NCBI RefSeq assembly: GCF_001194135.2
Contig: NC_068981.1
Coordinates: 27,091,210-27,155,209, forward strand
Direction of reading: 5' to 3'
DNA: 64,000 nt
Source: Octopus bimaculoides
Taxonomy: Eukaryota
Part shown: piece after piece, positions 29,377 through 63,179 of the stretch
Numbering within the stretch: position 1 is the stretch's first letter
How the letters are laid out: every line of letters starts with the position of its first letter
Notes under the pieces: generated by a model
What the model was told of the DNA's origin: nothing
What the model saw: only the letters and a program-made list of their open reading frames with translations
Database searches by the model: none
Made by a program: the position numbers and the translations under genes

Positions 29377-29538
29377 TTACTGGTGTAATTTGTTTTGGTC
29401 AAATATTTTCGTTTTAGTCAAAACAAAAAAAATATTTTGAACTTCAGATCTGTGAGCTTCATGAATACCGCTGGGGATCCACAGTGGAGGATTTCGGCCT
29501 CCACCCACTGTCATGCCGTCATAGTATGTAAAGCGTAA
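29377..29538 (-). CDS. Candidate exon 6; 3' end uncertain (donor after 29469 or read-through to TAA at 29379-29377)
   Basis: Acceptor ggatttctccAG, phase 0, reading LRFTYYDGMTVGGGRNPPLWIPS. Possible donor g|GTATTC at 29468; otherwise open to TAA at 29377. Confidence 0.65.
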   Translation of the reverse strand, partial: LRFTYYDGMTVGGGRNPPLWIPSGIHEAHRSEVQNIFFVLTKTKIFDQNKLHQ

Positions 29539-31422
29539 CTGGAGAAATCCAACAATCAACGACCGAATCGAGTTATAGCATATAGAGATAAGAATGATTA
29601 ATATTAAATAAGAAAAAGAGAACGAAAATAACTGATTTCTATATCGTGCCTGTTATACATTGTGCTAGTTCTCTATCGTGCTATTGCTATAGCATACTAT
29701 CTTTATATCGCGTTATCAAAAGTTTCAGTATGGAGATATTCACGAATGTGTTACTATCTTTTTATTTAAACGTCCTCCCATACTTATTAGTGAGGTTCAC
29801 TATGAATGTTTCCCACGAATTTCTCACAATGCAGTTAACTGATTCCGAAAGACTAAGAAAGAAAGGATGAGTGAAAGAGAATAATTGTTCTCACATGTTG
29901 AACTGCAATTTATTTACCAACCATGGAATGATTGAAAGCAAAGTTGATGTGAGAGGGATTTAAAGTCAGATTGCAAATAACCGGAACTTAAAATTTAAGC
30001 TACATGTTCGAGCCTGTAACGCTTTTACCAGCCGACAGAATCGTCGGCTGGAAGAATTGTTGTAATTTTGCTGATATTCTGAAATGAAACTCATTGCCAT
30101 TAACACTTATTTCTAAATAATATTATTACTAAGATTTCCAACGGAAGCAAGTATAGAATCTACCATTAACTTCATTGGTTTTAGCGTTAAAAAAAAAGGG
30201 GGACAAGATCTCCATGAAAGACGTATACGGAAACAATAACATGTGTGAGTGAAATAGTATATGATACAGACGACAAACAGCTTTATGTATATTTTATATA
30301 TCAACAGGAACCTGTCTGTCTGGGACGCGTTCGTTGATTTCCAGTAATTTTTATAGAATACAGTGGTACTTATTATTTTCTTACTAGAGTTTTTCACAAT
30401 TCTATAGCCAATTAAATATTTATCGTTCCTGTATTTCATACAAATTATCATCGACTAATAAGAAAAATGTAGATGTTAAAACCACAATATCTATAAGCAT
30501 ACGTATAAATGTAAAGCAATTCATTCCTACTATATAAATTTGGCCTAATACCCAATAAACAAACGTTCAACAATTGTAATTACTAAGAACTGAGACATTA
30601 AAATTACCATTGCCTCTTAAATGTCATTTTATATTCTTGTTGTTATTTGATTTCAAGCGGTTATCCATGCAGCTAATATTTTTGTATTTGTCGTTTTTGG
30701 TTTGTTTGTCTTTTTTGTTCTTTTATTATTTTTCTATTTGGTAGAGAATTCTTCCATTGATTTCTGATACTATTTGCTAAGCAGTTACCATAAAAAAAAA
30801 CAATAACTAAGATCAACAACAAACTCAACCATTTCAATAATAGAAGCAAAATGCAAACAACAATAATTAATAGAACAATAAAATTACAGTAATAACGAAA
30901 AACAAATAAGTTAATTGACAAGTTAAACTTCACTCATCCACTATCTCATACATAAAAAAAAAATCTAACCGTCACTTAAATATTTGCCATAGTTTCTAGC
31001 GAATACAACTTTCAATCAAATTTTCAAGTCTGTCCGTTTGTCGTGCCTGTTGGCGCTTCTTTCTTTTGTTAGTTATTCCTTTCAGTGCTAGGGACTTGCT
31101 TAAGTGCGGAGCAAACTTAACCATTATGTGGAAGCAATAGTTTGAAATGGAAGGAGGGACTTATTCTGTCCGTTAATCAAATTCCAAACAATATCCGGTG
31201 TTTGGCGGTCGTGTCACAGGTTATTAAAATTAAGCTGTTTGATCAAGAGAGAACTATGTGTTAAGAACAAACTGGGCACTAGACAGAGGCTCAAAAAGAG
31301 ATCGATAGTAGAGAAAAGGAAATTGAGATAGCAGTAAGGATCATTGGATCGTGTCCCATGGCCGTTGAAAAAGTTTTTCAAGCCAAGTGCCGAACAACAA
31401 CGAACATGTTGTTCAAACATAC

Positions 31423-31486
31423 CCATCCATATTCATCTGGCACGTGCTTCGCATCGGTAAACACTTCTTCGTAACCGCAGTTGATT
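31423..31486 (-). CDS. Candidate exon 5 (64 nt)
   Basis: Acceptor tttgtttatttttcAG, donor tgg|GTATGT. Phase 2 to phase 0, reading INCGYEEVFTDAKHVPDEYGW. Confidence 0.75.
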
Positions 31487-32639
31487 CTGAAAAATAAACA
31501 AAAGCGCGATTTCAGGAAAAGTCTCTCATGAAACATAAAAAAAAAATACCACCTAAGGCAAAACAAAAGAAAACAAATGACGGCAATGGCGAGATTACTA
31601 GTAGTAGTAGTAGTAGTAGTAGTAGTAGTAGTAGTAGTAGTAGTAGTAGTAGTTATAGTAGTAGTAGTGGTGGCGGTGGTGGTGGTGGTGGTGGTGGTGG
31701 TGGNNNNNNNNNNNNNNNNNNNNNNNNNNNNNNNNNNNNNNNNNNNNNNNNNNNNNNNNNNNNNNNNNNNNNNNNNNNNNNNNNNNNNNNNNNNNNNNNN
31801 NNNNNNNNNNNNNNNNNNNNNNNNNNNNNNNNNNNNNNNNNNNNNNNNNNNNNNNNNNNNNNNNNNNNNNNNNNNNNNNNNNNNNNNNNNNNNNNNNNNN
31901 NNNNNNNNNNNNNNNNNNNNNNNNNNNNNNNNNNNNNNNNNNNNNNNNNNNNNNNNNNNNNNNNNNNNNNNNNNNNNNNNNNNNNNNNNNNNNNNNNNNN
32001 NNNNNNNNNNNNNNNNNNNNNNNNNNNNNNNNNNNNNNNNNNNNNNNNNNNNNNNNNNNNNNNNNNNNNNNNNNNNNNNNNNNNNNNNNNNNNNNNNNNN
32101 NNNNNNNNNNNNNNNNNNNNNNNNNNNNNNNNNNNNNNNNNNNNNNNNNNNNNNNNNNNNNNNNNNNNNNNNNNNNNNNNNNNNNNNNNNNNNNNNNNNN
32201 NNNNNNNNNNNNNNNNNNNNNNNNNNNNNNNNNNNNNNNNNNNNNNNNNNNNNNNNNNNNNNNNNNNNNNNNNNNNNNNNNNNNNNNNNNNNNNNNNNNN
32301 NNNNNNNNNNNNNNNNNNNNNNNNNNNNNNNNNNNNNNNNNNNNNNNNNNNNNNNNNNNNNNNNNNNNNNNNNNNNNNNNNNNNNNNNNNNNNNNNNNNN
32401 NNNNNNNNNNNNNNNNNNNNNNNNNNNNNNNNNNNNNNNNNNNNNNNNNNNNNNNNNNNNNNNNNNNNNNNNNNNNNNNNNNNNNNNNNNNNNNNNNNNN
32501 NNNNNNNNNNNNNNNNNNNNNNNNNNNNNNNNNNNNNNNNNNNNNNNNNNNNNNNNNNNNNTGTGTGTATATATTTCTCTGTGTGTGTGTGTGTGTACAT
32601 ATTTCTGTGTGTACTGGCATCTCCGGTCAAAGATGATAT

Positions 32640-32858
32640 ATAAGTGTTCAGACTTTCTGAACGAAATGCACAAATGTTTATACTGATCAAATGATGGCAC
32701 CGTACATTAACTTACTCTCTCCATCAAATCAAAATGGCCACAGACCAACGTGAAATCAAATGCTTCCCCCCAAGAACACAATGCGCCGCCTGATCCTTGA
32801 ACCGAAACTACTAACTAGTGATCAGGATTGCGTGCAACGACCTAAGCTCTAGACCATG
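32640..32858 (-). mobile_element. Decayed SINE-like element (related copy about 33880-34130 on plus)
   Basis: Shared catttgatggag..gtgaactaatg / ttgatggagagagtaagttaatg segment and tRNA-like head remnants. Confidence 0.5.
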
Positions 32859-61109: not shown

Positions 61110-62299
61110 NNNNNNNNNNATATATATATATATATATATAATATATGCGCAAAAAAATGCTCAATATTGTGTAAAAACAATTTGTACGTATATGAATTAA
61201 ATATATGAAAGATTGATATCATGTAGACCATAACGTTTACGACCAGGTTAGCCCTGAATGAACAATTTTACAATTAAAGGCTTTTCTTTGCGATTATTCC
61301 ATCGTCTGTATTATGGGTGTTACGTTATTCAAAGTGTTTTACATTTTTGACAGACCAGCAGAGAAGGATTTATAGAAATTTGACAGATATCTCTAGTGAG
61401 CTGAGCAGCTATTTAACAACTTTTAGTGGCTCGTAGATTTCTGTATTGGAATCTGCATTACGTAAGTAATTTTCATAGATAGAATCTCCTCTATCTTTCT
61501 TTGCTCGCTGCATAAAGCCAAAATGAAATGAAGAAACGATGACAATTATGTCAGTATTTATTTTCCCACCGATATCATAATGAATGAAAATATATCATTG
61601 AAATTTTTAGTTGAATTAACTTAAATGTTTAGGTAACCACAGGTCATAGATTCCGAACATGATATCTTTGAAAAATGCTACCTTTTTGTCTTTCAACATA
61701 TAAGGATGACATGAAGAATTAACTGGGATAGCACAATAACAATGATATTAGGGGGAAAAAAATCATTGAAATAAAAAGGAGAAAATGAGAAAAGAACCCA
61801 TCATATCTACAGTTCGAATAATTTCACTAATATTCTAAACAACAATCGGGTAGCTCATGAATAACTTGATGATTTGGCAATATCAGAAAATTGGAATAAA
61901 ATATGCGAAGGATAAAAAGACGCGTTTGCTGTTGAAAACGTTTTAAAAGCTTGTAAACTATTATGCATTAACTTCCAAAACCAGATTGCAACTTTGTATA
62001 CTTCTCCTTCAACCTGTTTCTTCATGAGCATTTTCTGGATCAACTACTTTTTTCTGGATGTATATTACATGAAAACGAGAGTAGGCAGACTCGGATAGTG
62101 CATTGATCAAATATTAGTTACATTCTCTATTCAGTTTCATGGAATTCTTCATTGACTTCAAATGACGCGATTTATTGTTTTCCTATCGATTTTTGTTGCC
62201 TCTGTTGTGTAACTGTGTATTGCAATAGCTTACTGAAGTACAAGTCAGGAGGAAATAGTTAGACAATTGTGAACTTGGTTTGCTTACTGAAACACCAAT

Positions 62300-62700
62300 C
62301 ATTCTCAGTTACAAAAGTTCATTATAAATTCAACGAAAGAAGATTATTAAAGATAGACATTACCATACTCACAATATGGAAAGAAATGTTACCTTACTAT
62401 AAACTTAAGATCATTCTTAACATACTGGATTACAAATTACATACGGTAATTGGTAAAAGTGACAAGGATAACAAATCTTCATTAAAGATTAAAATTGTGA
62501 TAACAAAAAAGAAAAACAAAATCAGATAAAGATCTGCAGGCAAGGACAAATTTCAATAAAATTTCAAGACAACTGGTTACACTTAGAATCGAACAAATAG
62601 GACAAATCACCTTCTAATACGTAGGAGAATTGTATGCCGCATAGATTTCTGCTATGGATGTTGGAAGTCTATTTCCGAAATTTCCAGTGGATATAAACAT
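62300..62700 (+). mobile_element. Decayed Penelope-like RT N-terminal fragment
   Basis: IGKSDKDN (IxxADKG-like) and ISAMDVGSLFPKFPVD at 62645-62692 (SxDVxSLFTNxPV-like). Confidence 0.6.
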
Positions 62701-63060
62701 TCGACATTTGATTTAATGGAATCTGTCTGCTACTTATTGTAATTCGATTGACTTTACATAGGCTACCTCAGAAGCTTCTTTGTATTGTAGTAAAAATATC
62801 TAAATTTTGTTTATCTTACAATATTTAATGGATATAGATCTTGCTAAAGGCCAAATGTCTCAACTAAGTATGACGCAAGCATGATTGCATGATTAAGAAG
62901 TCTGCTTTGAAACCTTCAGTTTCGCGTTCGTTCCCCAAGCTCGGAACCTCGAACGTACGTTTTTCAAAGTAGTTTTTGAAGGTGTAAATACTTGTCAGTA
63001 ATATTTGAAAGATGAAAAATTTGCGGAGGTATAGTCTCTATTTTCACATGATAGGCTTAC

Positions 63061-63179
63061 TGTAGTGCTCGATTCAAATGCACTCCTTGGCCTGAGCGTA
63101 CGATTAGTGAAATGTGTTCGTTCTTTTTTTAAATAGTTAGATGAAATCTCCGCTCTGGGGATAAATTTCTCTTCTATTC
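63061..63179 (-). CDS. Candidate exon 1 (119 nt)
   Basis: Acceptor ctgctagtttcAG, donor aca|GTAAGC. Open frame IEEKFIPRAEISSNYLKKERTHFTNRTLRPRSAFESSTT ends in phase 0. Alternative frame NRREIYPQSGDFI*LFKKRTNTFH*SYAQAKECI*IEHY ends in phase 1 and has 3 stops. Confidence 0.5.

Follow-up and report, generated by a model that had tools for sequence, protein, structure and literature searches.

We analysed a window of 64,000 nucleotides (nt) of the Octopus bimaculoides genome (NCBI RefSeq assembly GCF_001194135.2, contig NC_068981.1, positions 27,091,210 to 27,155,209 of the forward strand), in which an earlier note had proposed a six-exon gene of unrecognised family on the minus strand between window positions 29377 and 63179. 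The window is AT-rich animal DNA (35% GC) with 16 gaps of N and many microsatellites. At the proposed locus we find a chain of four short segments, the putative exons 3-6, which are compatible in frame and join into one open reading of 136 codons. No relative of this reading is present in the searched libraries, and chains of equal quality abound in null sequences. The data do not demonstrate a gene at this locus; as an overall verdict we cannot tell, and we lean towards a fortuitous chain over a real orphan gene.

Four minus-strand segments join in one open frame

Read directly on the minus strand, the putative exons 3-6 join in frame with junction phases 1, 2, and 0, and all of their borders are GT..AG. 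This reading bears out the coordinates, the phases, and the splice borders that had been described for them. In its short form, exon 3 (43973-43885, 89 nt) starts at the acceptor TTGTAG/G (slashes mark exon borders), ends in phase 1 at the donor AAG/GTAAGC, and encodes ..TDPITSLYTRLITGFVLREDRLTDFFGRE. It would be followed by exon 4 (37683-37587, 97 nt; CCACAG/A to GGC/GTAAGA), which is entered in phase 1, left in phase 2, and encodes DYSVLRTRNNLIGTGRHVTETYGKFYKIVHLLA, and by exon 5 (31486-31423, 64 nt; TTTTCAG/A to TGG/GTATGT), which encodes INCGYEEVFTDAKHVPDEYGW and ends in phase 0. Exon 6 (29538-29377, 162 nt including the TAA stop codon) begins at the acceptor CTCCAG/T. It comprises a coding-like core (29440-29538), which encodes LRFTYYDGMTVGGGRNPPLWIPSGIHEAHRSEVQ, and an AT-rich tail of non-coding appearance (29377-29439), which reads NIFFVLTKTKIFDQNKLHQ before the TAA. 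The joined product of 136 codons is TDPITSLYTRLITGFVLREDRLTDFFGREDYSVLRTRNNLIGTGRHVTETYGKFYKIVHLLAINCGYEEVFTDAKHVPDEYGWLRFTYYDGMTVGGGRNPPLWIPSGIHEAHRSEVQNIFFVLTKTKIFDQNKLHQ followed by the stop, and the tryptic peptides of the proposed frame include HVTETYGK and FTYYDGMTVGGGR. The four peptide motifs quoted in support of the gene are all present: GRHVTETYGKFYK is contiguous in exon 4, and the other three, REDRLTDFFGREDYSVL, LAINCGYEEVF, and GWLRFTYYDG, are formed only when the proposed exons are joined. In the plain translation these three appear as pieces, because they span proposed splice junctions.

The description of the exons as GC-richer islands also holds, with a GC content of 0.38-0.49 in the exons versus 0.28-0.41 in the flanks. 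All exons are single-copy within the window. The CpG density of exon 3 lies in the top 0.4% of the window and that of exon 5 in the top 1%.

The donor of exon 3, AAG/GTAAGC, is the top local donor (7.0 bits), and its acceptor TTGTAG/G at 43973 is the second-best locally. Use of the best local acceptor, ACAG/GCA at 44021, would add a 5′ extension on the minus strand (43974-44021) and puts a TGA in the proposed frame, which only the weaker acceptors at 43973 or 43989 leave open. In another frame, the extension reads NADLLSFIEQLLTLVG and then closes. This conflict between acceptor and frame leaves three possibilities: a weaker acceptor is used, a mutation or an assembly indel has shifted the frame by 1 nt, or there is no real exon at this position. 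Exon 5 combines the best local donor with the second-best local acceptor, and exon 6 has the best local acceptor. Exon 6 itself contains no usable donor, so that this exon would be terminal if it is real. The first AATAAA follows the stop codon at a distance of 470 nt; this agrees with a background of 2.3 such signals per kb and is uninformative.

Exon 4 is the weakest link of the chain. Its generic splice scores are about 0 bits, it ranks 24th among 213 phase-compatible alternatives, and it carries no coding signal (codon-position P = 0.44). Omission of exon 4 breaks the frame; consequently, the model needs between exons 3 and 5 some exon that is entered in phase 1 and left in phase 2. About 280 nt to each side, exon 4 is bracketed by a direct pair of a 116-nt element (37188-37303 and 37964-38079), the copies of which are 82% identical, with similarity extending to about 190 nt.

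The complement of six exons was not borne out at the 5′ side of the model. Exon 1 of the earlier note is probably the minus-strand segment 63179-63061 (119 nt; TTTCAG/GA...ACA/GTAAGC), the open frame of which reads IEEKFIPRAEISSNYLKKERTHFTNRTLRPRSAFESSTT. This candidate has a good acceptor (TTTCAG/G) and a good donor (ACA/GTAAGC), lacks an ATG, and shows no coding signal (codon-position P = 0.42). Exon 2 is not identifiable: none of the 183 in-frame bridging candidates is singled out, and dispersed repeats contain two of the better candidates. The model thus contains a stop codon and three GT..AG junctions, while a start codon, and with it a complete start-to-stop frame, is absent.

Assembly gaps lie within the proposed introns

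Exons 5 and 6 are both carried by the contig 20970-31703 and are the sole exon pair on one contig. Hence, the proposed intron 5 (29539-31422, 1884 nt), which contains no assembly gap, is the only fully sequenced intron. From exon 4 to exon 5, the proposed link has to pass four gaps and three small contigs (0.7-1.1 kb); the proposed intron 4 (31487-37586) accordingly holds runs of N at 31704-32561, 33302-33671, 34688-34975, and 36027-36402. Exon 4 stands alone on a 4.1-kb contig (36403-40507). Two further gaps (40508-40517 and 41606-41774) are crossed between exon 3 and exon 4 in the proposed intron 3 (37684-43884). Since all runs of N fall within proposed introns, with the nearest splice site at least 218 nt away, the length of the gaps cannot alter the frame.

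Nearly every gap is adjoined by (AT)n/(TA)n or another microsatellite, for example at 33302, 34975, 36402, 41606/41774, 48267/48360, and 50659, and several gaps are placeholders of exactly 10 N. The gaps next to microsatellites probably represent unresolved simple repeats, as breaks in a short-read assembly would give.

Chains of equal quality are abundant in reversed sequence

To the proposed chain we compared null sequences obtained by reversal, in which composition and repeats are preserved. At the observed quality of splice sites, about 300 open segments bounded by AG..GT occur per strand in 29-45 kb. The best four-segment chains assembled from such segments by dynamic programming score 34.6 and 34.7 on the two real strands, and 30.1 and 35.6 in the reversed sequences. 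On the same amino-acid plus splice scale, where the best chains reach 30-35, the proposed chain scores 5.1. Counting as equal or better those chains that match it in splice score, openness, length, codon-position score, and Fickett score all together, the minus strand of the window holds 75, the plus strand 16, and the two reversed nulls 308 and 6. The mildly favourable coding statistics of the chain do not hold up once the freedom of choosing segments is corrected for window-wide.

No relative of the chain peptide is found in the searched libraries

That the family is unrecognised was upheld by all searches. For the chain peptide, Pfam is silent at E ≤ 10, a word-indexed protein search and scans of viral and metagenome contigs return no relative, and PDB sequences yield only noise. 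An exhaustive HMMER search of 1.84 billion representative proteins provides no true homologue and a single match, P0001 (E = 1.7e-25), which we rejected because it is a translated tandem repeat that sums 15 weak matches, one unit reaching 30 bits. P0001 is a 1355-residue library ‘protein’ with a repeat unit of about 75 residues, and such an entry is a trap for automated homology calls. Matches to Protein A in the PDB were discarded as repeat-summed noise with no significant stretch. A homologue that conserves the proposed frame and intron positions, looked for in proteins by the word index, exhaustive HMMER, viral and metagenome contigs, Pfam, and the PDB, was not found; the searches covered protein collections together with these contigs, and mollusc genomes and transcriptomes not at the DNA level.

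Two controls define the reach of these results. When carboxypeptidase A is used as the query, the matches include thousands of animal proteins, drawn from RefSeq, UniRef, nr, and EukProt. The parent collection therefore covers animals, and the lack of relatives, even of an annotated protein from the same species, is a real negative. The word index misses the mariner fragment in intron 4, which Pfam recognises at E = 6e-27. Word-index nulls are weak for decayed or divergent sequences, a limit that the exhaustive search does not have.

A single-sequence AlphaFold2 model of the chain product has a mean predicted local distance difference test (pLDDT) score of 33 and is uninformative. Exact-product look-ups for three open reading frames (ORFs) of the window gave none on record, a literature search for peptide strings of the chain gave nothing, and Rfam and tRNA scans gave no match. 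A scan by amino-acid composition was swamped by translated microsatellites and does not discriminate.

A short patch of exon 6 resembles the carboxypeptidase zinc site

In a phmmer search of the PDB with the exon 5-6 peptide, the top five matches are all carboxypeptidase A1 at its zinc-site segment, with E values of 0.23-0.79. Exon 6 contains the patch GGGRNPPLWIPSGIH, which resembles GGS.RPAIWID.GIH around the zinc ligand His69 of the M14A peptidases (carboxypeptidase A/B; PF00246), and the zinc-site alignment sets GGS.RPAIWID.GIHSRE against GGGRNPPLWIPSGIHEAH. In the HMMER alignment of GIHSRE with GIHEAH, His69 is kept, Arg71 is replaced by Ala, and Glu72 by His, whereby the glutamate of the HxxE motif is lost. 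An alternative reading of the zinc site through HRSE needs a 3-residue insertion and finds no support. A comparison with a 16-sequence procarboxypeptidase A profile by hhalign gives a probability of 25% over 19 columns.

In M14 enzymes, His69 and Glu72 are zinc ligands, Arg71 binds substrate, and the remaining domain is marked by the motifs NPDG, WRKTR, D.NRNW, HSYSQ, and ELRD. None of these motifs was found colinearly downstream of exon 6, and no pro-segment was found upstream. A tblastn search with a carboxypeptidase A probe recovers only the exon 6 patch and no downstream M14 exons, Pfam finds nothing on the minus strand of 20970-29376, and the upstream part of the chain aligns to procarboxypeptidase A with z = -0.24 against shuffles. 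In contrast to a true M14A peptidase, the resemblance spans just 19-21 residues and is statistically non-significant, and the rest of the domain of about 300 residues and its pro-segment are absent from the window. We therefore rejected an M14 carboxypeptidase identity, for which about 240 further residues would be expected downstream and a pro-segment upstream; neither was found, and the catalytic-site Arg and Glu are lost.

An upstream open reading frame gives a sub-threshold match to the TERT TEN domain

Upstream of exon 3, an ATG-initiated ORF of 79 codons on the minus strand (54894-54655) coincides with a match to TEN_TERT (PF11474). The match (minus strand, 54658-54924) reaches 18.5-19 bits, below the curated cut-off of 25 bits, with E values of 0.0017-0.0024, and covers profile positions 23-67 of 156. 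The ATG stands in a good context (A at -3), and the ORF could be spliced to the exon 3 acceptor at 44021 through phase-1 donors. When the segment is joined to exons 3-6, the score is 16.6 bits, with no gain in score or coverage, and exons 3-6 alone do not match the TEN profile. The likeness is thus confined to one upstream open segment and, different from TERT, stops short of exons 3-6.

No TERT chain in the PDB was matched, and no exons for the TRBD (T motif) or for the reverse transcriptase (RT) motifs 1, 2, and A-E were found in the window, either by tblastn with human TERT or by Pfam on the minus strand of 20970-29376. Alignments to human TERT give z values from -0.6 to +0.4 against shuffles; such shuffle tests also rejected a by-eye alignment of ‘VHLLA’, ‘ITGF’, and ‘PPLW’ to human TERT. 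The TEN-like segment shows no coding signal, its Fickett value of 0.749 being at the 34th percentile. Since the Pfam scans comprised about 30 sequences, one match at E of about 0.002 is close to the chance expectation. The TERT identity was rejected on the lack of a gain on joining, of a PDB match, of TRBD and RT exons, and of a coding signal.

Interpretation of the chain

According to the reading towards which we lean, four single-copy, slightly GC-richer segments of repeat-filled, AT-rich non-coding DNA would each happen to be stop-free in one frame and to have AG and GT at its borders. DNA of this composition is rich in dinucleotides that look like splice sites and in stretches of 20-50 codons without a stop, so that in-frame four-segment chains of such quality arise by chance many times per 64 kb. 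We infer that this particular chain is one of these chance chains and not a real transcript. The leaning follows from the chance expectation, the lack of relatives, and the defects of the gene model, which together outweigh a modest codon-structure signal; the failure of both family leads also speaks for it. The defects are the missing start codon, an exon 1 without coding signal, the missing exon 2, the TGA of exon 3, the weak exon 4, and the non-coding-like tail of exon 6, the last 19 codons of which have a poor codon-position score (87th percentile from the top). Whether the chain is fortuitous, with no demonstrable gene behind it, is nonetheless an evenly balanced question.

Several observations weigh against chance and speak for a real gene. 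Each exon occurs once in the window and exceeds its flanks in GC and CpG. By Fickett TESTCODE, the joined coding sequence scores 0.903 and the core up to HRSEVQ 0.994, compared with a null mean of about 0.6, and the value of 0.903 is reached by only 3-7% of random in-frame open chains. The joined sequence shows the pattern G1 > G2 > G3 and T3 > T2 > T1, which is typical of coding sequence. Among length-matched null segments, the codon-position bias places exon 3 in the top 8%, exon 5 in the top 6%, and the exon 6 core in the top 4%; the proposed frame is the best of the three in all four exons, with a Fisher's combined P of 0.016. Moreover, the frame continues over three GT..AG junctions, and the borders of the chain use the best or second-best local splice sites. 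With the four islands fixed, only 0.6% of 74,250 boundary combinations are open, and the proposed combination ranks 6th by summed splice score. The scores for splicing and coding come from generic models, not from training on this organism, for which their power is uncertain. 

Such observations would be accounted for if the segments formed the 3′ coding end of a real minus-strand gene that is unannotated and restricted to its lineage, either an orphan or very fast-evolving, with exon 6 as its terminal exon, an explanation that we regard as possible but rather unlikely. Its long introns would be filled with microsatellites, SINE-like elements (for short interspersed nuclear element), and transposon remnants, its 5′ exons would lie upstream and perhaps beyond the window, and its product would have no recognisable domain, so that a biochemical role could not be inferred. 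The physical linkage of exons 5 and 6 on one contig and the need of the frame for some phase 1 in, phase 2 out exon where exon 4 lies add to the signals in its favour. Against it stand the lack of a homologue, or of an annotated protein of the same species, in a collection with animal proteomes, the lack of a Pfam domain, of a start codon, and of credible 5′ exons, the acceptor and TGA problem of exon 3, the weak exon 4, the equally good chains in null sequences, and a structural model that does not inform. A real, expressed, lineage-restricted gene that annotation has missed, of which exons 3, 5, and 6 and probably also some exon 4 would form the 3′ end, is doubtful; its protein would have no detectable relative among the 1.84 billion representatives. 

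An improbable alternative is that the chain is the relic of a once-coding gene, a unitary pseudogene or fragment, in which exons 3, 5, and the exon 6 core retain residual codon structure and which was disabled by the exon 3 frame problem and the loss of other exons. The coding signal is restricted to some of the islands, and after the best exon 3 acceptor the frame opens as NADLLSFIEQLLTLVG and then shifts to the proposed one, as a 1-nt indel would produce; yet an open frame of 136 codons is unexpected in a relic too old to show homology. One concrete candidate for such a relic would be a decayed M14A-type carboxypeptidase, from the GG..P..WI..GIH patch. It is favoured by the convergence of the five best PDB matches on the carboxypeptidase A1 zinc site and by hhalign, which aligns the same 19 columns. 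However, these matches are non-significant, the equivalents of Arg71 and Glu72 are lost, the Pfam M14 model is silent, downstream M14 exons are found neither by tblastn nor by Pfam on 20970-29376, and the upstream part does not exceed its shuffles. Even less credible, to the point of being very improbable, is a 5′ end of the TERT gene, in which the ATG first exon at 54894-54655 would start the TEN domain and exons 3-6 would provide the rest. The sub-threshold PF11474 match, the A at -3, and the phase-1 donors that could reach the acceptor at 44021 suit this reading. They are opposed by the lower score without added coverage on joining, the failure of exons 3-6 to match anything by themselves, the lack of TERT matches in the PDB and of TRBD or RT-motif exons in the window, z values around zero against human TERT, the Fickett value at the 34th percentile, and the number of Pfam scans from which the one match was drawn.

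Repeats and transposon remnants in the window

The proposed introns contain microsatellites, of which perfect arrays make up 7% of non-N bases, SINE-like copies, two other dispersed families, and remnants of mariner and LINE-like (long interspersed nuclear element) transposons. None of the repeats and remnants overlaps the proposed exons. In intron 4 there are microsatellites, a single copy of the SINE-like element, and, on the plus strand, the remnant of a mariner transposase (35726-35971). Intron 3 holds microsatellites, SINE-like copies, and a LINE-tail-like string on the plus strand (42928-43146).

Decayed fragments of mariner transposase are recognised on the plus strand by Pfam Transposase_1 at 35726-35971 (E = 6e-27) and 21046-21285 (E = 4.5e-8); the former is cut off by the gap at 36027. 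On the plus strand of 49712-50490, open pieces in three frames resemble a decayed Tc1/mariner-type transposase (‘...ISFFSDEKPFCQD’), for which Pfam finds nothing. By eye, we take the strings at 42928-43146 (plus strand; ‘CNRVDEIIAHITNECLGVAQNYYKLWRYDQVAKVLHWNLCEK’) and about 22300-22900 (minus strand; ‘ETEALICAAQEQALRTNYIKYRI’ and ‘CMALAQKEYKRRQDNIARLVHWILCNKYG’) to be typical of C-terminal tails of LINE reverse transcriptase, on which Pfam is silent.

The SINE-like element of about 200 nt is present in at least nine copies in the window, on both strands (1731-1951, 14364-14548, 14571-14781, 16585-16796, 34313-34534, 42342-42532, 42705-42922, 46125-46328, and 54332-54461). Its copies are 68-81% identical and have no tRNA or Rfam match. 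A first further dispersed family occupies 693-1184, 4315-4525, 39540-39880, and 56821-57465. The second (2581-2951, 14836-14983, and 60741-61108) is up to 89% identical over 372 nt, and from it derives the peptide-like string ‘ERVQQGSPPSPAGASW’ that recurs in the window.

Implications

In its layout, the chain resembles animal orphan genes with repeat-filled introns: its exons are short (64-162 nt), its introns measure 2-6 kb and are full of microsatellites and transposon remnants, the borders are GT..AG, and no homologue or domain is found. Real orphan genes, in contrast, are defined by a transcript and preferably by a product, whereas this model has no start codon or settled 5′ end and is matched by null chains of equal quality. 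It equally resembles false-positive ab initio models, which consist of splice-like dinucleotides and open frames only, lack homology, and are incomplete at the 5′ end. As for such fortuitous ORF chains, the reversed-sequence controls contain many chains comparable to it; from typical chance chains it differs by a somewhat better codon-position signal (top 3-7%).

If the gene were real, it would be one more unannotated orphan gene masked by a gapped, repeat-rich assembly; it would help the annotation, and its weight would be modest without a function. For calibration, the two by-eye family resemblances, to the M14 zinc site and to the TERT TEN domain, failed when their predictions were tested, and in the reversed-sequence controls the chains of equal quality can number in the hundreds per 64 kb. 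Clean GT..AG sites and joining frames are thus not evidence on their own in animal DNA that is AT-rich and repeat-rich.

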